A stretch of DNA of 64,000 bases from the NCBI GenBank assembly GCA_965644265.1, contig OZ286469.1:54932001-54996000 (forward strand), read 5' to 3'. Source of the DNA: Glycera tridactyla (Eukaryota). The position numbers and the translations under genes were made by a program. Below, one piece after another: positions 13,401-55,059 of the stretch. The number at the start of each line of letters is the position of its first letter. Positions within the stretch are counted from its first letter, which is position 1. The notes beneath the pieces were generated by a model. That model ran no database searches, was not told where the DNA came from, and was given only the letters and a program-made list of their open reading frames with translations.

Positions 13401-16400
13401 TGGTTCCTCTTACATACCAGATCCGATAGTATTTCCTGACCTGAAAAGTGCTATGTCTGCTGCTGCCGCTGGTAAAGGAAACCGTGGTGGATCACAGAGT
13501 GCGAAACGCGGTCAGCGTCATGGCCAAAATCGAACGAGCCGCAGTGGAGGGAAGAACTCATAGCGCATGTGTAGTCGGCTATATCCGGGCCGAACACGAG
13601 AAACAATATGACAAGTTACGCGAATCAAATAGCGAAAAGAAGATGTATAGAGTGGGATGAAGGCTATCGCAATACGGTAATATATTGAATAACTTCTTAG
13701 GAGTGTATTGGCAAAGTGTATTGCATATGAATTGAATGAAACGGTGATTATAGATCGGTAAACAATGTAGTGCTCACGCCCACGTGTACACTTGACCCGG
13801 ATTGACCACATGGTACGCGCACGTGTGCGCTTTATAGAAACAATACTTCGAGTTAGAATGAATGGTTTTCTTGCCCTGATTAGGACTATTATCTAAATTG
13901 CTCTCGCCAAAGAGTTGATCAGTTTGGGAATATAATTATTACTGGCGGACTATTTTCCACTGAATTTATTGACAGGTAAAATTTATTCGCTTACTAATAA
14001 AAATTTATTGCACGCCCCATAAATAATTATTTCATGATTTATTGCAGATTAAACCGCCTGTGGCTGAACAGATAGCAAAAGATCGAGTAACACTGTTACC
14101 AGAAAACTGCCCGATATATCGTAGAAGACGACAATTGGAGATTCGAGGTGCACCACGGGTGCTTTACCTGTGCAGCAGTCATGTGTGGCGCTTAGGAAAG
14201 TTCGTTAGGAATATGTCGGATGATGACAACTTGAAAGAAGTTATGTCAGCATGGTCTTACTATGGGATCAGTGGGGCAAGCTGGGCCTGCTTTGCCAAAG
14301 AAGTCCGTGGCTCCTTTGCCAATACTCCAGCAGGAGCCAAGAAAGCCAGGATGTATGGTGATACACTTACAAAGATAAAATCCCAGGGAATCACTTTTGA
14401 CTATATTGTTTTAGTATTGGGGTCAAATGACATTGGGCGTTTTTCAACTAGAACAAAGTCTGCAGTGTACCGCATTGTGGACCCGAGAATTCGAAATAGA
14501 ATGATCACCAAAATGAGAATGGATGAATTCAAATTTCTGACTGGAAAGATAGTGGAGATACTGCTCATGTTGAAGAGTCATTTTCCATTAGCCAAATTCA
14601 GCAATATTCCCATTACTTGGCGCCCGGATTGGGATGATGAGTCACGTGTCTTGGCGCTATGGGTGAATCATTATCTGAGCAACCATGGTCCAGTTGAAAT
14701 GATGTTTCTACATACTCACTATTTGTTTGTCAAAGCGTACAGGCACATTAAGCCTGCCTTCAGTCTCCATGGAAAAAAGAAACCAAAGAAGAAGTCCTGT
14801 TCTCATGGAGAAATCCTCTCAGGTATGCTATTGCCAGATAGGGTACATTTGAACAATCATGGAAATCGTGCTGTTTGTCTTAATACAGTTGGGGGTCTAA
14901 TGGACAATTGGTTCTATGCAAGTTAGGAAAGAGTTGACCATAAACCAGATTTCTATCACATTAGATTATATTATGTAATGGTGTAATTATATTATATTAT
15001 GCTTATATTCTTCCACATAGGAGTATCGATGTTTGATTGGATATCCCTGGAACAGAGTATGAGGGAGATGTGCCACTGACATATAATGTCCATTAAAAAA
15101 AAAACTTGGTTTATAGCAAAAATTTTTTTTATAGGTATTGAAATGCATATATTACCTCAGGCTCTTACCGTTTGGTGGTCCTTGGGGAAATACTAAATGC
15201 AACTTCCAAATTTAAGAGGATCTCGGAAATTAAAATGTAAATGGAACATTATGTGTGACTCTGAGGTACCATGAATGAAGAGATGTTTGTCAAGTAAGTG
15301 CAAAAAATTGATATATGTTTCACATGTATGTGCTAGTAAGGTGAGGAACAAACAGCAAAACAAAATCAATAACAAAAGAAAAAAATTCCTACGTCTTTAT
15401 TCTGTTGTCTAGGGGCTTTGTCTTGGATGCCGGTTAGTGAAGATTGAAAAACACAATGTGTCCCAGGTTTTCACCGTTTGGATGATCCTTGTGGCAATAT
15501 ACTGTGTTGATATGTGAACTCACTGATTGGCATCTACGACATGGCCCTGGACCAATGGATGAATACGACAGACATGTTCTATAGTTTGTTTTAATGATGC
15601 GTAACTTTTATAAATCTAATAGAAATGAGCAATGGAGATCATTGTTAATCTAAGTGTGGGGGCATCGTAATATGAAACTACAACGGTACTTATCCCTTCT
15701 GGATGGGTGTTAAGAAATTTTACACAATATGTCGATATTGTTCGGCGACATGGATGACTCATCCCAGTATATACCGAGAAGTAATCTTATGCTGCTAATG
15801 GAATTTAAAATCATCACAGGTTCTTACCATTAGTGTGGTCCTTGTGAGGATGATGATACTTTAGAACAAAGCAGCATTGGAATTATGCAAGGATCAAATG
15901 GATGAGATTCCAGAGCTGGATTTATGTATTGACATGGTGAAAAGTAGAAGAATTTGTGTTCAAATCATTCTGTGTATATTCCCATACTATGTTTTGCATT
16001 TAAAACAAAAGCGTTATACAAACAGAGTTTTTTCCGGATAGATGAGGGAGGTTGACTTCATTCACATTTTGTTGAATTTCCCTCTATTTATGTTAACTGT
16101 AGACGCTGCCAGGGAGATTGTATATTTGTGAATTGTGGTAGGATACTATTGGAACAATGTAATATCTAATTCTTAATCGCATATAGACAAGCTCGTATGT
16201 ACTATTTATTATTATGTATTGACTGGGTTTGAAAATTGCATACTTGGTCGACATCATGTGATGACACTTGAGATGCATTAAGAACCACAATTTTTATTGC
16301 TGGCTTCATCTCAAATATGTATTAAGTTGGTAGCTGTACACTCTGAGAGTCAGTCAATTATTTCTTTATTACCTTATTTTATTTTATTTTATTTTCAAAT

Positions 16401-19400
16401 GAAGGGAGTTGACCTCATCCACATAGTTGTTGAAATTCCCCTTTATTAAGTGGGTATTTGCACATCCTGGGAGTCAATTAATTATTTCTTATTTTGTTTC
16501 ATTTCCCATATTGTCATGTTATATCATGTCATGATGAACTTATTTCCCGAAAAACTAGTTTGACAACGGTAATGAACTCATGTAGTTTAGTATCGTAAAT
16601 TAATTTAACGAGTGGCTAGACCAGACTTTTTTTGCCTGAATAGGCACCAGGAATTACTAACTTTTCTCATACTTAGACAATAATGATCGGGAGTATGGCC
16701 ATTTTGGGTCAGGAACAACCTCGATAGAATGGGAAGCGAGCATGTGCAGCCAGGCGAGTCTGACGGACGGTGATACTGATAAATCATCAGACCATGACAA
16801 AATAGACATCCCTACTAATCACTTGAATGTTGACAGCGCTGCTGCTAGTATTCCTGTTGGGAAAACAAGTGAAGATCTAAGCAGAATACCTAAATTGGAT
16901 ATGAGCTGGGTAACCGAATCGATTACTTTTCAAAAGCTGTTAGATGAAAAAATTGCTCTAGCTGTTACTGACAATGTGGCGTTAAGTGCGAACCTGGATA
17001 GGCTGTCACTCACTCTTGTATCAAATCATGCGGATAACATTCTAAATGAAAAGATTCAACAGAGGATAGACGACGTTCAAAACAAATGTAGAATGGATAT
17101 GGAAGCCTATGTGGAGGATACTGTAAAGGGAACTACTGAAGTATGTAAAGAAGAGCTTCTTGAAAAACATTCAACACTTGCTACCATAGTTCAAGATCAG
17201 AACACTCGGATTAATACTATTGAATCGCGTTTGAATAGCTATGCGGCAGAGGTTGATCAAGAACTTAAGTCGTTGAAAGCGGCTAGGATTGTTGACCCCC
17301 CAAGGATAGGAGAAGATTCTCAACAGTACGAGGAAATGGATCTACAGGAGATGAAGGAACTAATTGCACTTTTATGTCTTCGATTAGAAGAACATGATTC
17401 GAGATTGGAAAAGACTGAAATTGATATTGATATCCTTCAAAAAATTGAAAGACTTAGTGTGATCATTGTGGAAGGTATGCCCTTCAAACGAGGTTCTACT
17501 TTACTGGACCAGTTGACTAAATTTCTGAAAGATCAGATTGGTGTACAGGTAACAGGTGCAGATATATCGCAAGTTGTTCGTTTCGGCCCTGTTCGAGAAA
17601 ACAAACCCAGATCATTGCTGGTTAGATTCTGCAATTCAAACATGCGTAGAGTTGTTTTGAAACAAAAACACAAGTTGCACAAGACTGAGTATTTTATTCG
17701 AGAATTCCTCACGCCATGGGAGAGCAAACTCTTCAATCTTGCAAGGGACACAAAAAGGCAAAGTCTTATAAAATTTGCCTGGACCCAGGATGGAAGGGTT
17801 TGCGTCTCTCATGGTCGAGAGGAAAAGAAATTCATCCTGTATGACCATACCACGTTGCATGATGCGATCAACAAAGGAGGTGATAGTACACAGCAGGGAC
17901 ATGGACCTGATGTTGGTGAGACTGTTGGGGGAGACAAGACACGTGACTGACAATGCTCAGATGGGGTCATAGATGAAACAGTATCCAACATGGAAACTAA
18001 TGATTCTGTGGACCCAAATACTACCGCGATACCTTGTAGTTTCTCAGACTTCATACCACCCACTTTCAAAATACCACATTCACAAAAAAAAGATAAAACT
18101 CTACCCAAACCTGACAAAGACCCACACCTTTCTAAACAACCATGGAATCTGGTTAAAGCAGGGAAATCGCTACAAAGAATGAGAGAAAAAGTGGGAAACG
18201 AAATGAAAAAGGGTAAAGATATGAAACAGCCTAAAATCAGTTTTGGTTCCTCTTACATACCAGATCCGATAGTATTTCCTGACCTGAAAAGTGCTATGTC
18301 TGCTGCTGCCGCTGGTAAAGGAAACCGTGGTGGATCACAGAGTGCGAAACGCGGTCAGCGTCATGGCCAAAATCGAACGAGCCGCAGTGGAGGGAAGAAC
18401 TCATAGCGCATGTGTAGTCGGCTATATCCGGGCCGAACACGAGAAACAATATGACAAGTTACGCGAATCAAATAGCGAAAAGAAGATGTATAGAGTGGGA
18501 TGAAGGCTATCGCAATACGGTAATATATTGAATAACTTCTTAGGAGTGTATTGGCAAAGTGTATTGCATATGAATTGAATGAAACGGTGATTATAGATCG
18601 GTAAACAATGTAGTGCTCACGCCCACGTGTACACTTGACCCGGATTGACCACATGGTACGCGCACGTGTGCGCTTTATAGAAACAATACTTCGAGTTAGA
18701 ATGAATGGTTTTCTTGCCCTGATTAGGACTATTATCTAAATTGCTCTCGCCAAAGAGTTGATCAGTTTGGGAATATAATTATTACTGGCGGACTATTTTC
18801 CACTGAATTTATTGACAGGTAAAATTTATTCGCTTACTAATAAAAATTTATTGCACGCCCCATAAATAATTATTTCATGATTTATTGCAGATTAAACCGC
18901 CTGTGGCTGAACAGATAGCAAAAGATCGAGTAACACTGTTACCAGAAAACTGCCCGATATATCGTAGAAGACGACAATTGGAGATTCGAGGTGCACCACG
19001 GGTGCTTTACCTGGGCAGCAGTCATGTGTGGCGCTTAGGAAAGTTCGTTAGGAATATGTCGGATGATGACAACTTGAAAGAAGTTATGTCAGCATGGTCT
19101 TACTATGGGATCAGTGGGGCAAGCTGGGCCTGCTTTGCCAAAGAAGTCCGTGGCTCCTTTGCCAATACTCCAGCAGGAGCCAAGAAAGCCAGGATGTATG
19201 GTGATACACTTACAAAGATAAAATCCCAGGGAATCACTTTTGACTATATTGTTTTAGTATTGGGGTCAAATGACATTGGGCGTTTTTCAACTAGAACAAA
19301 GTCTGCAGTGTACCGCATTGTGGACCCGAGAATTCGAAATAGAATGATCACCAAAATGAGAATGGATGAATTCAAATTTCTGACTGGAAAGATAGTGGAG

Positions 19401-22400
19401 ATACTGCTCATGTTGAAGAGTCATTTTCCATTAGCCAAATTCAGCAATATTCCCATTACTTGGCGCCCGGATTGGGATGATGAGTCACGTGTCTTGGCGC
19501 TATGGGTGAATCATTATCTGAGCAACCATGGTCCAGTTGAAATGATGTTTCTACATACTCACTATTTGTTTGTCAAAGCGTACAGGCACATTAAGCCTGC
19601 CTTCAGTCTCCATGGAAAAAAGAAACCAAAGAAGAAGTCCTGTTCTCATGGAGAAATCCTCTCAGGTATGCTATTGCCAGATAGGGTACATTTGAACAAT
19701 CATGGAAATCGTGCTGTTTGTCTTAATACAGTTGGGGGTCTACTGGACAATTGGTTCTATGCAAGTTAGGAAAGAGTTGACCATAAACCAGATTTCTATC
19801 ACATTAGATTATATTATGTAATGGTGTAATTATATTATATTATGCTTATATTCTTCCACATAGGAGTATCGATGTTTGATTGGATATCCCTGGAACAGAG
19901 TATGAGGGAGATGTGCCACTGACATATAATGTCCATTAAAAAAAAAACTTGGTTTATAGCAAAAAAAATTTTTATAGGTATTGAAATGCATATATTACCT
20001 CAGGCTCTTACCGTTTGGTGGTCCTTGGGGAAATACTAAATGCAACTTCCAAATTTAAGAGGATCTCGGAAATTAAAATGTAAATGGAACATTATGTGTG
20101 ACTCTGAGGTACCATGAATGAAGAGATGTTTGTCAAGTAAGTGCAAAAAATTGATATATGTTTCACATGTATGTGCTAGTAAGGTGAGGAACAAACAGCA
20201 AAACAAAATCAATAACAAAAGAAAAAAATTCCTACGTCTTTATTCTGTTGTCTAGGGGCTTTGTCTTGGATGCCGGTTAGTGAAGATTGAAAAACACAAT
20301 GTGTCCCAGGTTTTCACCGTTTGGATGATCCTTGTGGCAATATACTGTGTTGATATGTGAACTCACTGATTGGCATCTACGACATGGCCCTGGACCAATG
20401 GATGAATACGACAGACATGTTCTATAGTTTGTTTTAATGATGCGTAACTTTTATAAATCTAATAGAAATGAGCAATGGAGATCATTGTTAATCTAAGTGT
20501 GGGGGCATCGTAATATGAAACTACAACGGTACTTATCCCTTCTGGATGGGTGTTAAGAAATTTTACACAATATGTCGATATTGTTCGGCGACATGGATGA
20601 CTCATCCCAGTATATACCGAGAAGTAATCTTATGCTGCTAATGGAATTTAAAATCATCACAGGTTCTTACCATTAGTGTGGTCCTTGTGAGGATGATGAT
20701 ACTTTAGAACAAAGCAGCATTGGAATTATGCAAGGATCAAATGGATGAGATTCCAGAGCTGGATTTATGTATTGACATGGTGAAAAGTAGAAGAATTTGT
20801 GTTCAAATCATTCTGTGTATATTCCCATACTATGTTTTGCATTTAAAACAAAAGCGTTATACAAACAGAGTTTTTTCCGGATAGATGAGGGAGGTTGACT
20901 TCATTCACATTTTGTTGAATTTCCCTCTATTTATGTTAACTGTAGACGCTGCCAGGGAGATTGTATATTTGTGAATTGTGGTAGGATACTATTGGAACAA
21001 TGTAATATCTAATTCTTAATCGCATATAGACAAGCTCGTATGTACTATTTATTATTATGTATTGACTGGGTTTGAAAATTGCATACTTGGTCGACATCAT
21101 GTGATGACACTTGAGATGCATTAAGAACCACAATTTTTATTGCTGGCTTCATCTCAAATATGTATTAAGTTGGTAGCTGTACACTCTGAGAGTCAGTCAA
21201 TTATTTCTTTATTACCTTATTTTATTTTATTTTATTTTCAAATGAAGGGAGTTGACCTCATCCACATAGTTGTTGAAATTCCCCTTTATTAAGTGGGTAT
21301 TTGCACATCCTGGGAGTCAATTAATTATTTCTTATTTTGTTTCATTTCCCATATTGTCATGTTATATCATGTCATGATGAACTTATTTCCCGAAAAACTA
21401 GTTTGACAACGGTAATGAACTCATGTAGTTTAGTATCGTAAATTAATTTAACGAGTGGCTAGACCAGACTTTTTTTGCCTGAATAGGCACCAGGAATTAC
21501 TAACTTTTCTCATACTTAGACAATAATGATCGGGAGTATGGCCATTTTGGGTCAGGAACAACCTCGATAGAATGGGAAGCGAGCATGTGCAGCCAGGCGA
21601 GTCTGACGGACGGTGATACTGATAAATCATCAGACCATGACAAAATAGACATCCCTACTAATCACTTGAATGTTGACAGCGCTGCTGCTAGTATTCCTGT
21701 TGGGAAAACAAGTGAAGATCTAAGCAGAATACCTAAATTGGATATGAGCTGGGTAACCGAATCGATTACTTTTCAAAAGCTGTTAGATGAAAAAATTGCT
21801 CTAGCTCTTACTGACTATGTGGCGTTAAGTGCGAACCTGGATAGGCTGTCACTCACTCTTGTATCAAATCATGCGGATAACATTCTAGATGAAAAGATTC
21901 AACAGAGGATAGACGACGTTCAAAACAAATGTAGAATGGATATGGAAGCCTATGTGGAGGATACTGTAAAGGGAACTACTGAAGTATGTAAAGAAGAGCT
22001 TCTTGAAAAACATTCAACACTTGCTACCATAGTTCAAGATCAGAACACTCGGATTAATACTATTGAATCGCGTTTGAATAGCTATGCGGCAGAGGTTGAT
22101 CAAGAACTTAAGTCGTTGAAAGCGGCTAGGATTGTTGACCCCCCAAGGATAGGAGAAGATTCTCAACAGTACGAGGAAATGGATCTACCGGAGATGAAGG
22201 AACTAATTGCACTTTTATGTCTTCGATTAGAAGAACATGATTCGAGATTGGAAAAGACTGAAATTGATATTGATATCCTTCAAAAAATTGAAAGACTTAG
22301 TGTGATCATTGTGGAAGGTATGCCCTTCAAACGAGGTTCTACTTTACTGGACCAGTTGACTAAATTTCTGAAAGATCAGATTGGTGTACAGGTAACAGGT

Positions 22401-25400
22401 GCAGATATATCGCAAGTTGTTCGTTTCGGCCCTGTTCGAGAAAACAAACCCAGATCATTGCTGGTTAGATTCTGCAATTCAAACATGCGTAGAGTTGTTT
22501 TGAAACAAAAACACAAGTTGCACAAGACTGAGTATTTTATTCGAGAATTCCTCACGCCATGGGAGAGCAAACTCTTCAATCTTGCAAGGGACACAAAAAG
22601 GCAAAGTCTTATAAAATTTGCCTGGACCCAGGATGGAAGGGTTTGCGTCTCTCATGGTCGAGAGGAAAAGAAATTCATCCTGTATGACCATACCACGTTG
22701 CATGATGCGATCAACAAAGGAGGTGATAGTACACAGCAGGGACATGGACCTGATGTTGGTGAGACTGTTGGGGGAGACAAGACACGTGACTGACAATGCT
22801 CAGATGGGGTCATAGATGAAACAGTATCCAACATGGAAACTAATGATTCTGTGGACCCAAATACTACCGCGATACCTTGTAGTTTCTCAGACTTCATACC
22901 ACCCACTTTCAAAATACCACATTCACAAAAAAAAGATAAAACTCTACCCAAACCTGACAAAGACCCACACCTTTCTAAACAACCATGGAATCTGGTTAAA
23001 GCAGGGAAATCGCTACAAAGAATGAGAGAAAAAGTGGGAAACGAAATGAAAAAGGGTAAAGATATGAAACAGCCTAAAATCAGTTTTGGTTCCTCTTACA
23101 TACCAGATCCGATAGTATTTCCTGACCTGAAAAGTGCTATGTCTGCTGCTGCCGCTGGTAAAGGAAACCGTGGTGGATCACAGAGTGCGAAACGCGGTCA
23201 GCGTCATGGCCAAAATCGAACGAGCCGCAGTGGAGGGAAGAACTCATAGCGCATGTGTAGTCGGCTATATCCGGGCCGAACACGAGAAACAATATGACAA
23301 GTTACGCGAATCAAATAGCGAAAAGAAGATGTATAGAGTGGGATGAAGGCTATCGCAATACGGTAATATATTGAATAACTTCTTAGGAGTGTATTGGCAA
23401 AGTGTATTGCATATGAATTGAATGAAACGGTGATTATAGATCGGTAAACAATGTAGTGCTCACGCCCACGTGTACACTTGACCCGGATTGACCACATGGT
23501 ACGCGCACGTGTGCGCTTTATAGAAACAATACTTCGAGTTAGAATGAATGGTTTTCTTGCCCTGATTAGGACTATTATCTAAATTGCTCTCGCCAAAGAG
23601 TTGATCAGTTTGGGAATATAATTATTACTGGCGGACTATTTTCCACTGAATTTATTGACAGGTAAAATTTATTCGCTTACTAATAAAAATTTATTGCACG
23701 CCCCATAAATAATTATTTCATGATTTATTGCAGATTAAACCGCCTGTGGCTGAACAGATAGCAAAAGATCGAGTAACACTGTTACCAGAAAACTGCCCGA
23801 TATATCGTAGAAGACGACAATTGGAGATTCGAGGTGCACCACGGGTGCTTTACCTGGGCAGCAGTCATGTGTGGCGCTTAGGAAAGTTCGTTAGGAATAT
23901 GTCGGATGATGACAACTTGAAAGAAGTTATGTCAGCATGGTCTTACTATGGGATCAGTGGGGCAAGCTGGGCCTGCTTTGCCAAAGAAGTCCGTGGCTCC
24001 TTTGCCAATACTCCAGCAGGAGCCAAGAAAGCCAGGATGTATGGTGATACACTTACAAAGATAAAATCCCAGGGAATCACTTTTGACTATATTGTTTTAG
24101 TATTGGGGTCAAATGACATTGGGCGTTTTTCAACTAGAACAAAGTCTGCAGTGTACCGCATTGTGGACCCGAGAATTCGAAATAGAATGATCACCAAAAT
24201 GAGAATGGATGAATTCAAATTTCTGACTGGAAAGATAGTGGAGATACTGCTCATGTTGAAGAGTCATTTTCCATTAGCCAAATTCAGCAATATTCCCATT
24301 ACTTGGCGCCCGGATTGGGATGATGAGTCACGTGTCTTGGCGCTATGGGTGAATCATTATCTGAGCAACCATGGTCCAGTTGAAATGATGTTTCTACATA
24401 CTCACTATTTGTTTGTCAAAGCGTACAGGCACATTAAGCCTGCCTTCAGTCTCCATGGAAAAAAGAAACCAAAGAAGAAGTCCTGTTCTCATGGAGAAAT
24501 CCTCTCAGGTATGCTATTGCCAGATAGGGTACATTTGAACAATCATGGAAATCGTGCTGTTTGTCTTAATACAGTTGGGGGTCTACTGGACAATTGGTTC
24601 TATGCAAGTTAGGAAAGAGTTGACCATAAACCAGATTTCTATCACATTAGATTATATTATGTAATGGTGTAATTATATTATATTATGCTTATATTCTTCC
24701 ACATAGGAGTATCGATGTTTGATTGGATATCCCTGGAACAGAGTATGAGGGAGATGTGCCACTGACATATAATGTCCATTAAAAAAAAAACTTGGTTTAT
24801 AGCAAAAAAAATTTTTATAGGTATTGAAATGCATATATTACCTCAGGCTCTTACCGTTTGGTGGTCCTTGGGGAAATACTAAATGCAACTTCCAAATTTA
24901 AGAGGATCTCGGAAATTAAAATGTAAATGGAACATTATGTGTGACTCTGAGGTACCATGAATGAAGAGATGTTTGTCAAGTAAGTGCAAAAAATTGATAT
25001 ATGTTTCACATGTATGTGCTAGTAAGGTGAGGAACAAACAGCAAAACAAAATCAATAACAAAAGAAAAAAATTCCTACGTCTTTATTCTGTTGTCTAGGG
25101 GCTTTGTCTTGGATGCCGGTTAGTGAAGATTGAAAAACACAATGTGTCCCAGGTTTTCACCGTTTGGATGATCCTTGTGGCAATATACTGTGTTGATATG
25201 TGAACTCACTGATTGGCATCTACGACATGGCCCTGGACCAATGGATGAATACGACAGACATGTTCTATAGTTTGTTTTAATGATGCGTAACTTTTATAAA
25301 TCTAATAGAAATGAGCAATGGAGATCATTGTTAATCTAAGTGTGGGGGCATCGTAATATGAAACTACAACGGTACTTATCCCTTCTGGATGGGTGTTAAG

Positions 25401-28400: not shown

Positions 28401-31400
28401 TGCCCTGATTAGGACTATTATCTAAATTGCTCTCGCCAAAGAGTTGATCAGTTTGGGAATATAATTATTACTGGCGGACTATTTTCCACTGAATTTATTG
28501 ACAGGTAAAATTTATTCGCTTACTAATAAAAATTTATTGCACGCCCCATAAATAATTATTTCATGATTTATTGCAGATTAAACCGCCTGTGGCTGAACAG
28601 ATAGCAAAAGATCGAGTAACACTGTTACCAGAAAACTGCCCGATATATCGTAGAAGACGACAATTGGAGATTCGAGGTGCACCACGGGTGCTTTACCTGG
28701 GCAGCAGTCATGTGTGGCGCTTAGGAAAGTTCGTTAGGAATATGTCGGATGATGACAACTTGAAAGAAGTTATGTCAGCATGGTCTTACTATGGGATCAG
28801 TGGGGCAAGCTGGGCCTGCTTTGCCAAAGAAGTCCGTGGCTCCTTTGCCAATACTCCAGCAGGAGCCAAGAAAGCCAGGATGTATGGTGATACACTTACA
28901 AAGATAAAATCCCAGGGAATCACTTTTGACTATATTGTTTTAGTATTGGGGTCAAATGACATTGGGCGTTTTTCAACTAGAACAAAGTCTGCAGTGTACC
29001 GCATTGTGGACCCGAGAATTCGAAATAGAATGATCACCAAAATGAGAATGGATGAATTCAAATTTCTGACTGGAAAGATAGTGGAGATACTGCTCATGTT
29101 GAAGAGTCATTTTCCATTAGCCAAATTCAGCAATATTCCCATTACTTGGCGCCCGGATTGGGATGATGAGTCACGTGTCTTGGCGCTATGGGTGGATCAT
29201 TATCTGAGCAACCATGGTCCAGTTGAAATGATGTTTCTACATACTCACTATTTGTTTGTCAAAGCGTACAGGCACATTAAGCCTGCCTTCAGTCTCCATG
29301 GAAAAAAGAAACCAAAGAAGAAGTCCTGTTCTCATGGAGAAATCCTCTCAGGTATGCTATTGCCAGATAGGGTACATTTGAACAATCATGGAAATCGTGC
29401 TGTTTGTCTTAATACAGTTGGGGGTCTACTGGACAATTGGTTCTATGCAAGTTAGGAAAGAGTTGACCATAAACCAGATTTCTATCACATTAGATTATAT
29501 TATGTAATGGTGTAATTATATTATATTATGCTTATATTCTTCCACATAGGAGTATCGATGTTTGATTGGATATCCCTGGAACAGAGTATGAGGGAGATGT
29601 GCCACTGACATATAATGTCCATTAAAAAAAAAACTTGGTTTATAGCAAAAAAAATTTTTATAGGTATTGAAATGCATATATTACCTCAGGCTCTTACCGT
29701 TTGGTGGTCCTTGGGGAAATACTAAATGCAACTTCCAAATTTAAGAGGATCTCGGAAATTAAAATGTAAATGGAACATTATGTGTGACTCTGAGGTACCA
29801 TGAATGAAGAGATGTTTGTCAAGTAAGTGCAAAAAATTGATATATGTTTCACATGTATGTGCTAGTAAGGTGAGGAACAAACAGCAAAACAAAATCAATA
29901 ACAAAAGAAAAAAATTCCTACGTCTTTATTCTGTTGTCTAGGGGCTTTGTCTTGGATGCCGGTTAGTGAAGATTGAAAAACACAATGTGTCCCAGGTTTT
30001 CACCGTTTGGATGATCCTTGTGGCAATATACTGTGTTGATATGTGAACTCACTGATTGGCATCTACGACATGGCCCTGGACCAATGGATGAATACGACAG
30101 ACATGTTCTATAGTTTGTTTTAATGATGCGTAACTTTTATAAATTTAATAGAAATGAGCAATGGAGATCATTGTTAATCTAAGTGTGGGGGCATCGTAAT
30201 ATGAAACTACAACGGTACTTATCCCTTCTGGATGGGTGTTAAGAAATTTTACACAATATGTCGATATTGTTCGGCGACATGGATGACTCATCCCAGTATA
30301 TACCGAGAAGTAATCTTATGCTGCTAATGGAATTTAAAATCATCACAGGTTCTTACCATTAGTGTGGTCCTTGTGAGGATGATGATACTTTAGAACAAAG
30401 CAGCATTGGAATTATGCAAGGATCAAATGGATGAGATTCCAGAGCTGGATTTATGTATTGACATGGTGAAAAGTAGAAGAATTTGTGTTCAAATCATTCT
30501 GTGTATATTCCCATACTATGTTTTGCATTTAAAACAAAAGCGTTATACAAACAGAGTTTTTTCCGGATAGATGAGGGAGGTTGACTTCATTCACATTTTG
30601 TTGAATTTCCCTTTATTTATGTTAACTGTAGACGCTGCCAGGGAGATTGTATATTTGTGAATTGTGGTAGGATACTATTGGAACAATGTAATATCTAATT
30701 CTTAATCGCATATAGACAAGCTCGTATGTACTATTTATTATTATGTATTGACTGGGTTTGAAAATTGCATACTTGGTCGACATCATGTGATGACACTTGA
30801 GATGCATTAAGAACCACAATTTTTATTGCTGGCTTCATCTCAAATATGTATTAAGTTGGTAGCTGTACACTCTGAGAGTCAGTCAATTATTTCTTTATTA
30901 CCTTATTTTATTTTATTTTATTTTCAAATGGAGGGAGTTGACCTCATCCACATAGTTGTTGAAATTCCCCTTTATTAAGTGGGTATTTGCACATCCTGGG
31001 AGTCAATTAATTATTTCTTATTTTGTTTCATTTCCCATATTGTCATGTTATATCATGTCATGATGAACTTATTTCCCGAAAAACTAGTTTGACAACGGTA
31101 ATGAACTCATGTAGTTTAGTATCGTAAATTAATTTAACGAGTGGCTAGACCAGACTTTTTTTGCCTGAATAGGCACCAGGAATTACTAACTTTTCTCATA
31201 CTTAGACAATAATGATCGGGAGTATGGCCATTTTGGGTCAGGAACAACCTCGATAGAATGGGAAGCGAGCATGTGCAGCCAGGCGAGTCTGACGGACGGT
31301 GATACTGATAAATCATCAGACCATGACAAAATAGACATCCCTACTAATCACTTGAATGTTGACAGCGCTGCTGCTAGTATTCCTGTTGGGAAAACAAGTG

Positions 31401-34400
31401 AAGATCTAAGCAGAATACCTAAATTGGATATGAGCTGGGTAACCGAATCGATTACTTTTCAAAAGCTGTTAGATGAAAAAATTGCTCTAGCTCTTACTGA
31501 CTATGTGGCGTTAAGTGCGAACCTGGATAGGCTGTCACTCACTCTTGTATCAAATCATGCGGATAACATTCTAGATGAAAAGATTCAACAGAGGATAGAC
31601 GACGTTCAAAACAAATGTAGAATGGATATGGAAGCCTATGTGGAGGATACTGTAAAGGGAACTACTGAAGTATGTAAAGAAGAGCTTCTTGAAAAACATT
31701 CAACACTTGCTACCATAGTTCAAGATCAGAACACTCGGATTAATACTATTGAATCGCGTTTGAATAGCTATGCGGCAGAGGTTGATCAAGAACTTAAGTC
31801 GTTGAAAGCGGCTAGGATTGTTGACCCCCCAAGGATAGGAGAAGATTCTCAACAGTACGAGGAAATGGATCTACAGGAGATGAAGGAACTAATTGCACTT
31901 TTATGTCTTCGATTAGAAGAACATGATTCGAGATTGGAAAAGACTGAAATTGATATTGATATCCTTCAAAAAATTGAAAGACTTAGTGTGATCATTGTGG
32001 AAGGTATGCCCTTCAAACGAGGTTCTACTTTACTGGACCAGTTGACTAAATTTCTGAAAGATCAGATTGGTGTACAGGTAACAGGTGCAGATATATCGCA
32101 AGTTGTTCGTTTCGGCCCTGTTCGAGAAAACAAACCCAGATCATTGCTGGTTAGATTCTGCAATTCAAACATGCGTAGAGTTGTTTTGAAACAAAAACAC
32201 AAGTTGCACAAGACTGAGTATTTTATTCGAGAATTCCTCACGCCATGGGAGAGCAAACTCTTCAATCTTGCAAGGGACACAAAAAGGCAAAGTCTTATAA
32301 AATTTGCCTGGACCCAGGATGGAAGGGTTTGCGTCTCTCATGGTCGAGAGGAAAAGAAATTCATCCTGTATGACCATACCACGTTGCATGATGCGATCAA
32401 CAAAGGAGGTGATAGTACACAGCAGGGACATGGACCTGATGTTGGTGAGACTGTTGGGGGAGACAAGACACGTGACTGACAATGCTCAGATGGGGTCATA
32501 GATGAAACAGTATCCAACATGGAAACTAATGATTCTGTGGACCCAAATACTACCGCGATACCTTGTAGTTTCTCAGACTTCATACCACCCACTTTCAAAA
32601 TACCACATTCACAAAAAAAAAGATAAAACTCTACCCAAACCTGACAAAGACCCACACCTTTCTAAACAACCATGGAATCTAGTTAAAGCAGGGAAATCGC
32701 TACAAAGAATGAGAGAAAAAGTGGGAAACGAAATGAAAAAGGGTAAAGATATGAAACAGCCTAAAATCAGTTTTGGTTCCTCTTACATACCAGATCCGAT
32801 AGTATTTCCTGACCTGAAAAGTGCTATGTCTGCTGCTGCCGCTGGTAAAGGAAACCGTGGTGGATCACAGAGTGCGAAACGCGGTCAGCGTCATGGCCAA
32901 AATCGAACGAGCCGCAGTGGAGGGAAGAACTCATAGCGCATGTGTAGTCGGCTATATCCGGGCCGAACACGAGAAACAATATGACAAGTTACGCGAATCA
33001 AATAGCGAAAAGAAGATGTATAGAGTGGGATGAAGGCTATCGCAATACGGTAATATATTGAATAACTTCTTAGGAGTGTATTGGCAAAGTGTATTGCATA
33101 TGAATTGAATGAAACGGTGATTATAGATCGGTAAACAATGTAGTGCTCACGCCCACGTGTACACTTGACCCGGATTGACCACATGGTACGCGCACGTGTG
33201 CGCTTTATAGAAACAATACTTCGAGTTAGAATGAATGGTTTTCTTGCCCTGATTAGGACTATTATCTAAATTGCTCTCGCCAAAGAGTTGATCAGTTTGG
33301 GAATATAATTATTACTGGCGGACTATTTTCCACTGAATTTATTGACAGGTAAAATTTATTCGCTTACTAATAAAAATTTATTGCACGCCCCATAAATAAT
33401 TATTTCATGATTTATTGCAGATTAAACCGCCTGTGGCTGAACAGATAGCAAAAGATCGAGTAACACTGTTACCAGAAAACTGCCCGATATATCGTAGAAG
33501 ACGACAATTGGAGATTCGAGGTGCACCACGGGTGCTTTACCTGGGCAGCAGTCATGTGTGGCGCTTAGGAAAGTTCGTTAGGAATATGTCGGATGATGAC
33601 AACTTGAAAGAAGTTATGTCAGCATGGTCTTACTATGGGATCAGTGGGGCAAGCTGGGCCTGCTTTGCCAAAGAAGTCCGTGGCTCCTTTGCCAATACTC
33701 CAGCAGGAGCCAAGAAAGCCAGGATGTATGGTGATACACTTACAAAGATAAAATCCCAGGGAATCACTTTTGACTATATTGTTTTAGTATTGGGGTCAAA
33801 TGACATTGGGCGTTTTTCAACTAGAACAAAGTCTGCAGTGTACCGCATTGTGGACCCGAGAATTCGAAATAGAATGATCACCAAAATGAGAATGGATGAA
33901 TTCAAATTTCTGACTGGAAAGATAGTGGAGATACTGCTCATGTTGAAGAGTCATTTTCCATTAGCCAAATTCAGCAATATTCCCATTACTTGGCGCCCGG
34001 ATTGGGATGATGAGTCACGTGTCTTGGCGCTATGGGTGGATCATTATCTGAGCAACCATGGTCCAGTTGAAATGATGTTTCTACATACTCACTATTTGTT
34101 TGTCAAAGCGTACAGGCACATTAAGCCTGCCTTCAGTCTCCATGGAAAAAAGAAACCAAAGAAGAAGTCCTGTTCTCATGGAGAAATCCTCTCAGGTATG
34201 CTATTGCCAGATAGGGTACATTTGAACAATCATGGAAATCGTGCTGTTTGTCTTAATACAGTTGGGGGTCTACTGGACAATTGGTTCTATGCAAGTTAGG
34301 AAAGAGTTGACCATAAACCAGATTTCTATCACATTAGATTATATTATGTAATGGTGTAATTATATTATATTATGCTTATATTCTTCCACATAGGAGTATC

Positions 34401-37400
34401 GATGTTTGATTGGATATCCCTGGAACAGAGTATGAGGGAGATGTGCCACTGACATATAATGTCCATTAAAAAAAAAACTTGGTTTATAGCAAAAATTTTT
34501 TTTATAGGTATTGAAATGCATATATTACCTCAGGCTCTTACCGTTTGGTGGTCCTTGGGGAAATACTAAATGCAACTTCCAAATTTAAGAGGATCTCGGA
34601 AATTAAAATGTAAATGGAACATTATGTGTGACTCTGAGGTACCATGAATGAAGAGATGTTTGTCAAGTAAGTGCAAAAAATTGATATATGTTTCACATGT
34701 ATGTGCTAGTAAGGTGAGGAACAAACAGCAAAACAAAATCAATAACAAAAGAAAAAAATTCCTACGTCTTTATTCTGTTGTCTAGGGGCTTTGTCTTGGA
34801 TGCCGGTTAGTGAAGATTGAAAAACACAATGTGTCCCAGGTTTTCACCGTTTGGATGATCCTTGTGGCAATATACTGTGTTGATATGTGAACTCACTGAT
34901 TGGCATCTACGACATGGCCCTGGACCAATGGATGAATACGACAGACATGTTCTATAGTTTGTTTTAATGATGCGTAACTTTTATAAATTTAATAGAAATG
35001 AGCAATGGAGATCATTGTTAATCTAAGTGTGGGGGCATCGTAATATGAAACTACAACGGTACTTATCCCTTCTGGATGGGTGTTAAGAAATTTTACACAA
35101 TATGTCGATATTGTTCGGCGACATGGATGACTCATCCCAGTATATACCGAGAAGTAATCTTATGCTGCTAATGGAATTTAAAATCATCACAGGTTCTTAC
35201 CATTAGTGTGGTCCTTGTGAGGATGATGATACTTTAGAACAAAGCAGCATTGGAATTATGCAAGGATCAAATGGATGAGATTCCAGAGCTGGATTTATGT
35301 ATTGACATGGTGAAAAGTAGAAGAATTTGTGTTCAAATCATTCTGTGTATATTCCCATACTATGTTTTGCATTTAAAACAAAAGCGTTATACAAACAGAG
35401 TTTTTTCCGGATAGATGAGGGAGGTTGACTTCATTCACATTTTGTTGAATTTCCCTTTATTTATGTTAACTGTAGACGCTGCCAGGGAGATTGTATATTT
35501 GTGAATTGTGGTAGGATACTATTGGAACAATGTAATATCTAATTCTTAATCGCATATAGACAAGCTCGTATGTACTATTTATTATTATGTATTGACTGGG
35601 TTTGAAAATTGCATACTTGGTCGACATCATGTGATGACACTTGAGATGCATTAAGAACCACAATTTTTATTGCTGGCTTCATCTCAAATATGTATTAAGT
35701 TGGTAGCTGTACACTCTGAGAGTCAGTCAATTATTTCTTTATTACCTTATTTTATTTTATTTTATTTTCAAATGAAGGGAGTTGACCTCATCCACATAGT
35801 TGTTGAAATTCCCCTTTATTAAGTGGGTATTTGCACATCCTGGGAGTCAATTAATTATTTCTTATTTTGTTTCATTTCCCATATTGTCATGTTATATCAT
35901 GTCATGATGAACTTATTTCCCGAAAAACTAGTTTGACAACGGTAATGAACTCATGTAGTTTAGTATCGTAAATTAATTTAACGAGTGGCTAGACCAGACT
36001 TTTTCTGCCTGAATAGGCACCAGGAATTACTAACTTTTCTCATACTTACTACTGCCGCACGAATATAGTAGCTAAGCTACACATTTGATAAAACGCTCAT
36101 ATTTAGATGTAATTGGCGCTTATATTAGGAAATTTTATTTTTCAAATCAGTACCTTAGCTGATTCATTATATATTAATAAAATTCATAAACTTATTTACT
36201 CTTTACATGGCACCCCAGCAAGCAGATAGTGAGGTCTCAACTACTAGAAACCGGACAGTGCAGCTTGATACGGCGGAAGATATCAAAAAATTAAAAGGTG
36301 TTAAAATTGCCCATCTGAATATTAGAGGCATCATACGTAAAATATGTGATCTCCAATTATTATTGCTGCAAAGCAACATTGACATACTGGTCGTCGCAGA
36401 AACTTTTTTATCATCTACAACAAGCAACAATGAAATTTATATACCGGGTTATTATATTATCAGGGCAGATCGAACAGCTGAAAGTAGAAGACAATGTGGA
36501 GGGGGGTTATTGGTTTATGTTCGAAAGGATAGAATTGTAGAATTCATTGAAGAGTTTGTAATCTGTTGTCCTGATGTAGAAGGTCTATGGTTCAAATTGT
36601 TGCTACCTGATACGCGTCCTATTTTTGTATGCGGCATGTACAGACCACCGCATGGTAACCCTGGTATCTTTGCAGATTGGATCGAGGATAATATATTGAC
36701 ATATGGTCTAGATGATAACGTAGATATTGTATTGATTGGAGATGCAAATATAGATTTAAAAAAATGCAGATCTACGAATCATTATGTGAAAACATTAAAA
36801 AACAATGGTCTTCAACAGCTAATCGATATAGATACCAGGGTTACTACTGAATCGAGGACACTGATTGATCATATTTCTGTGAATAGGCCAGATTTGTATC
36901 ATCAACATGGAGTACTGGAATGTGGAATCTCTGATCATAGTCTAATAATTGCAGCAAGGAAAAAGTTACATAAGTCAAGGACATCTACGTTTGCCTTCTT
37001 TAAGGATTATTCCAAGACTGATTTAGAGAAGCTTAAGTATGACATAGTAACATACGACTGGTCGATATTCTACGCAACTAACGACGCCAACATATGTACT
37101 GACATCTTCCACCAGGTTTTGAACTCTTTAATAGATATCCATGTGCCACTGAAGCGGCACCGTCTAACAAACAACTGGCCCAAATGGCTGAATGGCGAAT
37201 ATTTAGACTTGGTAAAAGAAAGACAATTAGCAAATAAGCACTTCAAAATAAATAGTAGTGAAGATAATAAATTGTATAAAAGAGAAATTGAAAAAAAATT
37301 TATTAAACTAAAACGTCAACTCCAAAGAGAATTCATTACAAATTCTATAGCAGACCAAAAAGAAAACCCTAAAAAAATGTGGGAGATCTTGAATACTTTT

Positions 37401-40400
37401 TGGGGTAGGCGCAAGGGGTCAACTGAAATACATAAAATAGCAGACTCCACAGATCATAATACTATTGCTGAGAAATTGAATTCTTATTTTAGCACAGTTG
37501 GAGAACAATTAAGTAAAACTATCCAGGATAATGGTGTTGACGCCATAGCAAATTTCCCATATGATATAAAGAATATATTTAAATTGAATCAGATTAATAC
37601 TAATGATATCATAAAAATCGTAGAAGATCTATTGCCGAACAAAGCTGGTAAAGATGACGGATTACCTGTGAAGTTGATTAAATCCTGTCTGACTGAGTTG
37701 GCTCCTTTGCTATGTCATATCTATAATCTAAGTATTGAAAGTGGAGTTTTTCCCAGTACGTGGAAGTCAGCAACTATAGTACCTCTCTTTAAAGAAGGCA
37801 AACGCTCGCTAGAATCCAATTATAGACCCATTAGTCTCCTTTCGACACTGAGCAAAATCTTGGAAAAGCTTGTGCATTTGCAGATCTCGGCCTATTTTGA
37901 ATCTCATGGTCTACTGTGTCGGGAGCAGTCTGGTTTCAGAGAGGGATGCTCTACTGATTCATGCCTATTAGAATTTTTGGATAAGTTGTATGTAAACTTG
38001 GAGAAAGGCTTAACCAGTGTGGTACTCTTTCTGGATCTCAAGAAGGCTTTCGACACGGTGGACCATGGGATTCTTATTAGAAAACTTACCAGATATGGAG
38101 TGGATGAGAAAGGTGTGAAGTGGTTTTCTAGTTATTTGTCAGGCCGGAAGTGTCAAGTCCGAGCAAATGGTGTGCTGTCGGCGGAGAGAAGTATATCATG
38201 TGGCGTTCCTCAGGGCTCTATACTGGGCCCTTTATTGTTCACTATTTATGTAAATGATATCACACATCTTTTACAAGGGTCCAGTATGAGCCTCTATGCG
38301 GATGACACCGCTATAATGACCTCAGACACAGTCCCAATGAATTTGCAAAATAAACTTGAACAAGCACTTGATGATGTCAGTGTATGGTTATCGAGAAACA
38401 AGCTAAGTTTAAATGTCAAAAAAACACAGATAATGGTTTTTGGGACCAGGCACCAAGTCCAGAGATGCAACTTGATAGTTAAAACAAATGGACATGAAAT
38501 CAAACGAGTGGAGGTTTTTAAGTACTTGGGTGTATACTTAGACCCTTGCTTGACGTTTAAATCCCATGCAGAGCATATGAGAAAGAAAACCATTGGAAGG
38601 GTGGGTGTACTTGGCAGACTCAGGGGAGTGCTCAATATGAGCACTTCCCTGATGCTGTATAAGACACTCATTCTTCCAATCTTCGATTATTGCGATATAG
38701 TCTACGACAGTCTGGGTGTGGCTGACTCTAGTAAGCTACAAAGGGTACAGAATAAAGCACTAAGGATTATTACAAAAAGTGAACGATATGTTCGAACAAT
38801 CACAAATCACGAAACGCTTAAATTGCCATATCTAGACTGTCGTAGGGAGTATCATACTCTATTATACGCCAATAAGATACTTATTGGTGATGTTCACTCA
38901 CAGTATACACCTCTTTGCCAATATTCACAACCGATGCATGAATACGAAACTAGAATACGTAATAAAGCGCTCTTGACTGTGCCTATTCCAAGTTTGAAAC
39001 AAGGGGAGGGATCTTTCCGATATCGCAGCTCACAGCTATGGAATAGTTTCAGCAGTAAATATCCGGATTTCAAGAGCGATTGTCAATCACAATTTAAGGA
39101 ACGACTGAAAAATTTTCTACATATTGGATGATCCTTCCCCTACTCTACTCTACTACCATGAATACTAGTATACTGGTATATTTTGATACACTCTCTGTAT
39201 TTATTTTTGTGCTAGTATTTGTAATTAATTTTGTATCTAGTCTGCCTGCTACCGGTAAATTGTTGTATTTGGATGTGAGTCTATTTGGTCAATTATTTTT
39301 TATATATAGAGGAGAACACGAATCCTTGTTCAAAGTAGACTCAGCAATTTAGCAAATTGGAAAATTGAAAATTGAAAACTAATCTATCTTGCTTGCCGTA
39401 CATGTACTCTTTTCTAGATTGAATTACTATTCCTGCCTCGATTGGATTACATCATTATAATATTATTATTATTATTATTATTATTATTATCATCTTAACT
39501 TCGCGAAATAGGACCTAAAGTATTGTTTGTTACCATAGGTAATATTCTATCCATCTTATTATTATTATTATTATGTATCAGTCTTAGTACCCTTAATGGG
39601 TTGACTCTTCAATTTCATGCGTTGCATCAATGATTATTCGCAATTAGTTAAGAAATGTTATATTCGTCAACCTGGGAACGCACCCTTCGGGAGCATCAGT
39701 ATATACATGTAAATGTATGACGAATTGAAATAAAGAATGTAAAACAAAAGAAGTGGTCACTGCTCACAACAGATGGTCTGCTTGGTGTGAAATTCTTCCT
39801 TGATATTCTCTTAATCCACCACTGTTGAACTTTCACATCAGATGGGAATTTATGGAGTGATCTGGGTAATGTTCTAATTCCCATTACAACATTCAAATAC
39901 CACACTGTAGGGCATGATGAGCCAGGTGTTTTGACGATGTGTTGTTTTGACCTATTAGTTTTGCACTGAGCTAGAGATGGCCAGTGTAGCTCTTGACGTC
40001 ACATGCCGATGATACCCGAGGAATACCGAAGTACCAGATTCAAACATTCCAACTGTCTGACTACCCCAGAAAAGTTAGAAAAATAAGTTGTTGCTGATGT
40101 GCAAAAAAATTTTTCATTACCAAAGTATATGTAACTTTTTATATTCTTTCACATAGATTAAAGAGAATTTATTCTTTATATCTCCTTTAATCTGCATGTT
40201 GTTGAACTTTACCCGGTCAATCGATCAAATCCCTGCTTAACCTACCTGGTCCTCGGCCATCGTAATAGAGGTCGACGATGCGGAATGTTTTGGCATCTTC
40301 GACGAAGACTGCAGAGGCACGGAAATTATGCGCTGCTTCCACAATCGGCCCAATATTGGTCGCTGCCGGTGGGTTACTGGATATACTGCTCGGAATGTTC

Positions 40401-49492: not shown

Positions 49493-50874
49493 ATGCCAAG
49501 CTTCAGGCTTGCAGAGTGGGGGGAGTTCAGCTCAGCTTATGCGGTGATAGTTGCGCTGGAGGAGGCGGAGCTACAGATAACTGCGAAGCCAGTTGGAGAC
49601 ACGTACATCATCTCCGCAAAAGACGATGTCACGACACAGCATCTTCGGGAACTGACGGAACTAGACGGGAAACCTGTGACCCTGACAGAGGAATGGTGGC
49701 CATGAGGGTCCCGAAAGACGTACCGGACTCGGCGCTAATACGGAAAGTGGAACAGATCACAAAGGCGGAGCGGATCATGGGGACCGATATGGAGTCAAGG
49801 GAAAGGTACAAGACTACAAGTGTGAAAATCTGGATACAAGGAGAACCGCCAGCAGAAATCAGCCTGGGAGCGCTGGGGACGTTTCCCACAAGATTGTTCA
49901 TCCCGGAGCCGACCCGCTGTTACAGGTGCCAGCAATACGGTCACACACAGAGGGAGTGCCGTCGCTACGCAAGGTGTGGCTTCTGCAGCGAACGACACCC
50001 AACCAGAGAGTGTTTGGAAAAAGTGAAACAGGAAATGGAAGTAACGCTCAAGTGCATCAACTGCGGGGGAGAACACTCAGCCAGGTCAGCGGTATGCCCG
50101 ATCTACATGAAAAAGGCAGAGGAGACAAAAAAGCGGTTCCTGGCATCATGATCTCGGATCGGATCAGGGGCAGAAGCCCCTCCGCCAGCCCCTCCCCCAG
50201 GCATGGACAACACGCACTACCCGGGACTTCAGAGACAGCAACAGCAGCAGCGACAACAGCAACAAGAGCAACGACAGCACCTTCAGCAACAACCACCACT
50301 GCACCCACCGCAGCAAGCGGCCCAAGATGCTCAACCGGCATGGGGGCTTGGGGCGAAGGAAAACACCATGCCAATGGTACCACAGGGAGAACCGGTGATA
50401 GTGTTGACGCTAGGCACACTGAGAGGTCTGCTGGAAGGCATTGCAGCCATGGTGCTGACAGTGATGAAGGAGCCGGATGCAGGCCCAGCAGTGATAGAGA
50501 CGGTGGTGAACAGCCTCGCCACAACAATCATAGAGCAAGGACGAGATTTGGGAACAACAGTAACAGAGCCACCCGAGGCGTCAGGAACCCAGGTACCAGC
50601 AATACAGGCACAAACTCAATCAGGAACACCTCTGGATGCCAGGATAGAGGAGGAGAAAGAAAGGATGAAAGTGGAGGGCAGGAGGGGCACGAGAAGGAGG
50701 AGGAGCTCGAGTTCCAATTCCAGTCAGGACGAAGACAAGCCAAAACACCAAAGGCCAAAGAGGGGCACCCCCACGAAAACCGAAGTGCCAATGCCCCAGA
50801 GGGGGCAGGAGCAGCAGGAGGAAGGTCACCAGGATCAGGAGTTCATGGAGGTCAATGGAGACCCGGTGAAGTGA
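49493..50874 (+). pseudogene. Element C ORF1, three CCHC knuckles; frameshift near 49690 and in-frame TGA at 50149-50151
   Basis: CYRCQQYGHTQREC, CGFCSERHPTREC, CINCGGEHSARSAVC; 211-aa and 223-aa ORFs share one frame. Confidence 0.85.
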
Positions 50875-50996
50875 ACTACACTGGTGTAGCAGCAGGGATG
50901 GACGGACTGGTAAGACGACTCACGGGAAGACTACAAGACCCATGGAGCCCGGGAGGGACACAGGTTGAGGAACAACCAGTGCCCCCCCTCGGCTCA

Positions 50997-54722: not shown

Positions 54723-55059
54723 TGAGAGACAGCGTTGATTTGGACTTATTGACGTTATTGGAGTTATTGTTATTAAGGAAGGCTGTAGTTCATGAATTAA
54801 CTTGTGTAAATCGAAGCAACGCGGGTGAACGCACACACTGACATTCAGCTGAGAGTCGTATTGGCTATTGTGGACCACGTGACGAGAAGCAACGCGAGAG
54901 AACACTCACGCATGGACTTCATACTTATTGATTTAATTTGTTTGATGATACTGTTGGATACTGGAACTAACGGACTTACCAGACAAGGGCCAGTCTAAGA
55001 CAGTGGCCCGTCCCCCCCTTGAAGATTCAAGCCCGGGGAGAACCTACAACCAACCAACC

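Follow-up and report, generated by a model that had tools for sequence, protein, structure and literature searches.

Esterase-type (type IV) proteins encoded by open reading frame 1 (ORF1) of CR1/L2-like long interspersed nuclear elements (LINEs) were reportedly described by Kapitonov and Jurka in 2003. In CR1, L2 and RTEX LINEs the esterase domain belongs to a single ORF1 protein (PMC3905857, PMC4120745), and according to Schneider et al. (2013; PMC3905857) Repbase contained no esterase ORF1 protein joined to a further RNA-binding ORF1 module. A GDSL esterase gene, ORF3, is carried by the Vesta long terminal repeat (LTR) elements of bdelloid rotifers and by Athena Penelope-like elements (PMC5408684). 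Retained introns are a hallmark of Penelope-like elements (PMC4209133), and spliceosomal introns are kept in these elements and in Athena according to the passages of PMC4209133 and PMC1636488 that cite Arkhipova et al. (2003). Transcripts of L1, Tad, kangaroo-1, Penelope and Athena are also listed as having introns, as is TART antisense RNA; the TART introns lie in antisense, non-coding RNAs, and none of the introns listed is described there as splitting a conserved gene of the element (PMC1636488). Here we analyse two elements, A and B, in a 64,000-nucleotide (nt) stretch of the Glycera tridactyla genome (contig OZ286469.1, positions 54,932,001 to 54,996,000; hereafter the window). Each carries a gene for a predicted SGNH esterase that appears to be split by an intron. 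We put at about 80% the probability that an old GT-AG intron of the U2 type, in phase 0 and 23–31 codons past the ATG, has been kept in the esterase gene of a LINE family with an apurinic endonuclease (APE), whose copied RNA would be mostly unspliced and whose esterase would come from spliced RNA. A literature search, which did not extend to Repbase/Dfam annotation, turned up no report of a LINE whose esterase gene has an intron, or of this gene arrangement. Esterase-bearing LINEs and intron-retaining retroelements were each already known.

In element A, on the forward strand, exon 1 of the esterase gene (13608–13676) consists of an ATG and 22 further codons, and ends at the donor G/GTAATA (the slash marks the exon boundary). 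A 371-nt GT...AG intron in phase 0 follows (13677–14047; 36% GC), its 3' end, ...ttattgcag, being a T-rich run and CAG, and exon 2 (14048–14926) is intact, with 292 codons and a stop. Element B, on the reverse strand, has the same plan: an ATG and 22 codons (60217–60285) before the donor G/GTGAGA, a 303-nt GT...AG intron in phase 0 (59914–60216) ending in ...tcatacag, and an exon 2 (58988–59913) with one frameshift, so that its catalytic blocks lie across two frames. The exon and intron boundaries that a preliminary description of the window had proposed within these stretches (13608–14926, forward, and 60285–58988, reverse) were all confirmed when the DNA was read again. So were its statements that a 23-codon ATG exon precedes a GT donor in both elements, that the exons 1 share 8 of 23 residues and the exons 2 share 7 of their first 14, that the esterase frame opens in phase 0 right after a pyrimidine-rich CAG, and that neither element has an in-frame ATG before the catalytic serine block; in A, the first in-frame ATG of the exon 2 frame lies past that block. 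The introns are, as it had claimed, filled with stops (8–11 per frame in A and 7–8 in B) and dissimilar. At the nucleotide level no significant similarity between A and B was found in introns, spacers or untranslated regions (UTRs).

We assessed the exon 1 match in two ways. The two exons are mutual best non-self matches in a six-frame search of the whole window, and their alignment, anchored at the methionine, gave z = 5.4, a score reached by 0 of 2000 shuffles. Their similarity therefore exceeds chance. The spliced A and B proteins used below are the predicted exons of one gene joined as they stand.

An exhaustive phmmer scan of 1.84 billion representatives returned 19 distant relatives of the esterase, at 24–31% identity. 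We fetched the DNA of esterase relatives (L002–L018) and further scanned the metagenome with an alignment of the group 3 esterases, a clade of the tree described below. L009 has an ATG, 24 codons, the donor G/GTATTG and a 328-nt intron, which ends in ...ttttcag directly before the homologue of the 14-residue block that opens exon 2 in A and B. Its paralogue L017 has 24 codons, G/GTAAAT and a 379-nt intron, and L014 has 31 codons, G/GTAAAT and a 118-nt intron, its ATG overlapping the end of ORF1. Exon 1, donor and acceptor are thus present at the same codon boundary and in phase 0 in at least five distinct elements (A, B, L009, L017 and L014), which represent three esterase clades. This agrees with the earlier claim that a dedicated esterase gene in a LINE lineage has a conserved intron. 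Of four truncated contigs that show the acceptor, three (L008, L010 and L011) begin inside the intervening sequence, with stops followed by YAG just before the same codon; the acceptor of L011 is TAG and, read in frame, is a stop immediately ahead of the first conserved codon. In L015 there is an acceptor-like end, shifted by one base. Overall, the donor G/GT is found in 5/5 elements and the acceptor YAG/ in 8/8, and the pyrimidine fraction over positions −23 to −4 of the acceptors is 0.45–0.7.

Other relatives have no interruption. L002/L013, L003 and L018 have one open frame, in which 24 residues precede the same 14-residue block; this is the residue count of exon 1 in L009 and L017. L009 exon 1 is significantly similar to these N-termini: the comparison gave z = 3.0, and 11–19 of 2000 shuffles reached the score. 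Members of a third clade (L004, L005, L006 and L007) also have uninterrupted esterase frames, which brings the uninterrupted relatives to 7–8 in all. Local alignments of the A and B proteins, as spliced, with the uninterrupted proteins P0073, P0074 and P0060 continue across the junction at matching residue numbers; the alignment of spliced A with the L004 product starts at residue 18 in both, and that with P0074 at residue 10 in both. The preliminary description had taken members with an uninterrupted frame as evidence that would count against splicing. Such members exist but lack the intervening sequence precisely, and the precise absence of ∼300 nt is what copying of a spliced RNA would leave behind; they therefore support the joining of the exons. 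Exactly collinear intron-less relatives are, at the level of DNA, the strongest sign of exon joining short of RNA data, and the uninterrupted relatives look like natural, precise intron losses.

Two contigs start at splice-like positions, L010 with a donor-like GTAAGC and L012 at the first codon of the exon 2 equivalent; these are probably coincidental assembly breaks. The records that hold L002–L018 (ERZ23486739 and JAAUYI01) contain many diverged esterase copies, both intron-bearing and intron-less, and seemingly represent one metagenome sample assembled twice. So many diverged copies in a single sample imply that it holds DNA of a eukaryote rich in the LINE family of A and B.

L009 and L017 are old paralogues with saturated synonymous sites, and comparison of the two indicates what has been maintained. 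In exon 2 the proportion of nonsynonymous differences (pN) is 0.20 and that of synonymous differences (pS) 0.84; in exon 1 the corresponding values are 0.24 and 0.91. Their introns are 46% identical with 159 gap columns. By these measures purifying selection has acted on both esterase exons of the two intron-bearing paralogues, and their introns cannot be aligned; the ancestral lineages were therefore functional, intron-bearing elements and not dead copies. The synonymous sites of A and B are saturated and the pair is too diverged for such a ratio, but both keep all the catalytic blocks. In a weakly supported neighbour-joining tree of the esterases, A stands apart from the other clades, group 3 contains the intron-bearing L008–L011 with the intron-less pair L002/L003 nested inside, and the L004 clade is entirely intron-less. 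This pattern is most simply read as showing an old intron that was lost precisely at least twice; it is possible that the intron was instead gained later.

The preliminary description had assumed that the enzyme is an SGNH hydrolase, and both profile and predicted fold agree. Element A has the four blocks in order: serine (C-S-S-H), glycine (G-I-S-G), asparagine (G-S-N-D) and D-x-x-H. Element B has G-S-S-H, G-I-S-G, G-S-N-D and D-x-x-H, split over two frames. The GSSH catalytic block that had been ascribed to both elements is therefore correct for B, with the qualification that its exon 2 is frameshifted, and does not apply to A, which reads C-S-S-H. A word-indexed protein search with the esterase and a single-sequence phmmer search against PDB found nothing. 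The serine, glycine, GxND and DxxH blocks are common to the 19 relatives, and a family profile built from element A and 17 phmmer relatives matches the acetyl-xylan esterase Est2A at E = 2.5e-4, followed by a GDSL protein and platelet-activating factor acetylhydrolase (PAF-AH). The best Pfam matches are Lipase_GDSL and Lipase_GDSL_2, below the curated cut-off (E = 0.06 and 0.09 for A; 0.0013 for the best member). An AlphaFold model from the family alignment reached pLDDT 80 and pTM 0.78, compared with pLDDT 35 for a single-sequence model, and it has the three-layer alpha/beta/alpha fold of SGNH enzymes. In a Foldseek search of PDB nearly all the top matches of this model were SGNH/GDSL hydrolases, at probability 1.0 and a target-normalised TM-score of 0.5–0.64, among them PAF-AH-like proteins, GDSL lipases, and acetyl-xylan and sialate esterases. 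Because of the four blocks, the profile match and the modelled fold, assignment as a predicted SGNH hydrolase is supported. The esterases of this family form a divergent clade beyond the reach of the Pfam GDSL models. Two relatives, P0073 (L004, 3061–5415) and P0075, have the esterase fused to a low-complexity C-terminal tail of ∼380–480 residues, rich in Asn, Gln, Thr, Tyr and His, which is absent in A and B.

The genes around the esterase are those of a LINE. Element A ORF2 matches Exo_endo_phos (E = 6e-5) and RVT_1 (E = 1e-41) in Pfam, and both domains are also found in the pieces of B ORF2. Self-comparison of the window revealed no flanking long direct repeats (LTRs) apart from an internal tandem array, and A ends in a microsatellite tail. 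A and B are APE-type non-LTR retrotransposons by these features. In translated comparison they are collinear, with 26–49% identity in ORF1, 33–42% in the esterase and 50–58% in ORF2; neither the intron nor the sequence separating esterase from ORF2 is conserved. This makes the esterase the middle gene of the order ORF1, esterase, a 1.1–1.9-kb spacer and ORF2. The same arrangement recurs in relatives: the 9.7-kb L004 has an ORF1 24% identical to those of A and B, the esterase, 1.1 kb and an ORF2 36% identical to that of A; L015 has the esterase, ∼0.9 kb and then an APE-containing ORF2 39% identical to that of A; and L007 has an ORF1 homologue 5' of its esterase. The best ORF2 relatives are at most 39% identical.

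The esterase has its own ATG, separate from ORF1, in A, B, L003, L004, L014 and L017. In all members showing both features, this ATG lies between 14 nt before and 66 nt after the ORF1 stop, and translation of the esterase is for that reason probably coupled to termination of ORF1 on the same RNA, rather than dependent on a separate subgenomic mRNA. The ORF1 product (∼650 codons in A, 712 in B) was not classified by Pfam, by phmmer against PDB or by a four-sequence profile; these searches gave weak coiled-coil and Baculo_FP_2nd hints only, and a word-indexed protein search with the conserved part of B ORF1 found nothing. L001, the context of the ORF2 relative P0002, was considered as a further member and set aside, as it has no homologous ORF1 or esterase.

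In every member showing both genes, the stretch from esterase to ORF2 is 0.9–1.9 kb long, AT-rich, devoid of ORFs and unconserved (L004, 5416–6509; L015, 886–1777), a length well beyond what is usual between the ORFs of a LINE. We considered whether it might be a second intron, or whether ORF2 might be joined to an upstream exon, and rejected both: in each of A, B and L004 the ORF2 frame begins with an ATG of its own that stops precede, and there is no shared acceptor.

The first ORF1 of element A (11611–13563, ∼650 codons, with one in-frame stop) ends 44 nt before the exon 1 ATG, and the esterase gene is followed by an AT-rich, unconserved spacer (14927–16668 in the first unit). Between 11825 and 36048 a unit made up of part of ORF1, exon 1, intron, exon 2 and spacer is repeated head to tail five times on the forward strand, with a period of 4843–4844 bp and 99.8% identity. 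The further copies of exon 1 start at 18451, 23294, 28137 and 32981, and those of exon 2 lie at 18891–19769, 23734–24612, 28577–29455 and 33421–34299. The splice sites are identical and the esterase frame is intact in 5/5 copies; every unit carries a single in-frame stop in its ORF1, and the length of the fifth is different by one base. The spacer of the last unit (34300–36206, ∼1.9 kb) reaches an intact ORF2 of 974 residues (36207–39131) encoding APE endonuclease and reverse transcriptase, and the 3' UTR (39132–39492) ends in an (ATT)n microsatellite tail ∼330 nt past the ORF2 stop. The junctions between the 4.84-kb units show ∼1 nt of microhomology, and the array may reflect either amplification in the genome or faulty assembly.

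Two smaller observations concern the esterase region of A. A 14-codon mini-ORF (13567–13611) begins 3 nt past the stop of ORF1 and shares bases of its TGA with the exon 1 ATG (ATGA); this may be relevant to termination–reinitiation. In addition, eight residues of exon 1 (13620–13643) resemble eight residues of exon 2 (14063–14086), with 6/8 identical. The resemblance is peculiar to A, being weak or absent in B and L009, and could be due to chance or to a small internal duplication.

Element B lies on the reverse strand. An open ORF1 of 712 codons (60352–62490) ends 66 nt before the exon 1 ATG; the esterase gene is followed by a 1.1-kb spacer not conserved with A (57880–58987) and by an ORF2 with APE and reverse transcriptase and one in-frame stop (55027–57879). 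The 3' end of this ORF2 is cut by, or adjoins, a third LINE (49516–54722, forward strand), which is unrelated to A and B and runs convergently into the 3' end of B. It has an ORF1 with CCHC zinc knuckles (49516–50151) and an ORF2 of 1598 residues with APE, reverse transcriptase and RNase H. At 62696–63984, ∼200 nt 5' of B ORF1, lie ∼39 copies of a 33-bp unit (84% matches), which may be a repeated 5' UTR or promoter, by analogy with the monomers of some LINEs. Runs of N occur at 1203–1378, 5328–5697, 5737–5868 and 6016–6497, and a called ORF at 5256–6593 spans such runs. Rfam and tRNA scans of the whole window gave no matches.

We propose the following scheme. A and B would be old, diverged members of a three-cistron APE-type LINE family, with the order ORF1, SGNH esterase, spacer and ORF2. 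The host spliceosome would remove the intron, and full-length esterase (315 residues in A) would be made from spliced RNA only, the unspliced RNA giving a peptide of 26–34 codons from the same ATG. Since copies have inherited the intron over a long time, the RNA that is reverse transcribed would be mostly the unspliced form, and occasional copying of spliced RNA would found intron-less lineages. Intron retention or splicing would thus sort the transcripts of a single pool into those that serve as template and those that code for the esterase. That unspliced RNA is copied and spliced RNA codes for the esterase had already been suggested in the preliminary description, and we infer the same from the retention of the intron. 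By analogy with the role proposed for the ORF1 protein (ORF1p) of ZfL2-1 (PMC3905857), the enzyme may act in a lipid- or membrane-linked step.

A number of points weigh against this scheme. Splicing has been read from DNA alone; the donors of A (GTAATA) and L009 (GTATTG) are moderate matches to the metazoan consensus, the polypyrimidine tracts are modest, and exon 1 similarity between clades (A or B with group 3 or L004) falls short of significance in the individual comparisons. ORF2 starts 1–2 kb 3' of the esterase stop. Full-length RNA that has been spliced would retain ORF1 and ORF2, yet on our proposal it would rarely be copied. Copies A and B are partly broken, and the relatives stem mostly from short contigs in a single metagenome sample. 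If nothing were spliced, the 23–31-codon frame could be a conserved short upstream ORF acting as a reinitiation shuttle after ORF1, with the esterase started independently at a non-AUG codon close to where its frame opens, or not made in these copies. We regard this as quite improbable. The DNA-only nature of the evidence leaves room for it, and it would accommodate both the tight linkage of the exon 1 ATG to the ORF1 stop, as for a coupling ORF, and a TTG two codons 5' of the exon 2 start in A. However, in the uninterrupted relatives the exon 1-like peptide continues in frame into the esterase, the residue counts being identical, and it must therefore be the N-terminus of the esterase; nor would a reinitiation ORF account for G/GT and YAG at a homologous codon in every case, within otherwise unalignable sequence, or for the acceptor of L011, which places a stop immediately before the first conserved codon.

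A real intron that was gained once or several times in intron-less lineages, for example from an intron-generating element, would make the intron-less state the primitive one. The weak support of the esterase tree, the variable length of exon 1 (23, 24 or 31 codons) and the absence of the intron from 4/4 members of the L004-type clade leave room for gain instead of an ancestral intron with losses. We nevertheless think gain unlikely: A and B share codon boundary and phase with the distant group 3 clade, the intron sequences are unrelated, so that no common inserted element is seen, the intron-less L002/L003 are nested among intron-bearing group 3 members, and precise loss is mechanistically easy for an element copied from RNA. 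It is harder still to credit that the intron-bearing units are host genes or captured fragments outside a mobile element, such as a domesticated esterase lying by LINE debris. Introns are normal for host genes, and the A unit forms a tandem array in the genome, an amplification that retrotransposition does not produce. Against this, A, B, L004, L015 and L007 have the gene order ORF1–esterase–spacer–ORF2 in common, the parts co-diverging at 24–58% identity, the ORF1 stop and esterase ATG are 0–66 nt apart in all members examined, and single samples hold many diverged, decayed copies.

LINEs are copied from RNA, and an intron that is efficiently removed should therefore vanish from a family. The persistence of one in a selected gene points to control, by the element or by its host, over which isoform is translated into esterase and which is reverse transcribed. 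More tentatively, at somewhat less than even odds, the intron may be an ancient and selected part of the life cycle, older than the split between the three esterase clades, with regulated retention providing a pool of unspliced template and a spliced pool that supplies esterase in trans. If so, the intron-less sublineages would be natural records of copied spliced RNA, and a retrovirus-like division of labour would have evolved independently in a non-LTR element, giving a natural marker of template choice by LINEs. The family merits study because one LINE encodes a large ORF1 and an SGNH esterase as separate genes, because its divergent esterases escape standard domain models, and because the coexistence of intron-bearing and exactly intron-less sublineages supplies that marker ready-made. 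It also bears on annotation, as gene finders will miss the split esterase or mistake it for a host gene.

The type IV ORF1p of zebrafish ZfL2-1 resembles the A/B esterase in being an SGNH-type enzyme encoded 5' of the APE/reverse transcriptase ORF, with four catalytic blocks kept, and in its likely role, itself only proposed, in lipid- or membrane-linked assembly or transport of the ribonucleoprotein. The A/B esterase differs in having its own cistron 3' of a large ORF1, rather than a place behind a coiled coil in a single ORF1, in the intron within its gene, in the 0.9–1.9-kb spacer that follows, and in a sequence that matches no PDB chain beyond generic SGNH enzymes. Vesta and Athena share with A and B a stand-alone SGNH/GDSL gene as an extra retroelement ORF; they belong to a different element class, the gene lies 3' of pol, and there is no mention of introns in ORF3 (PMC5408684).

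Penelope-like elements are alike in keeping spliceosomal introns although they are copied through RNA. They have a telomerase-like reverse transcriptase and a GIY-YIG endonuclease or none, whereas A and B have APE and RVT_1, and a Pfam search of the A and B proteins gave no GIY-YIG match. The A/B-family intron, moreover, splits a conserved accessory coding gene at a site common to deep clades. Splicing of L1 RNA is cryptic and damaging. L1, Tad and TART have in common with the present family splice sites within non-LTR elements and the occasional copying of spliced RNA into DNA, spliced integrated copies being listed for L1 (PMC1636488); in the A/B family, by contrast, splicing is predicted to be needed for a protein of the element, at a site conserved under selection.

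Retroviral env mRNA arises by removal of gag-pol from a leader donor. The preliminary description had likened the arrangement in A and B to env expression, and in this respect the comparison fails: the A/B-family intron, of 118–379 nt, lies inside the esterase cistron, 23–31 codons past its ATG, and its removal takes out no other gene; ORF2 has its own ATG preceded by stops, and no evidence pointed to a subgenomic RNA. What the family would share with retroviral env and copia gag is the division of roles between the two RNAs, the unspliced form serving as genome or template and the spliced form as mRNA for an accessory or structural protein.

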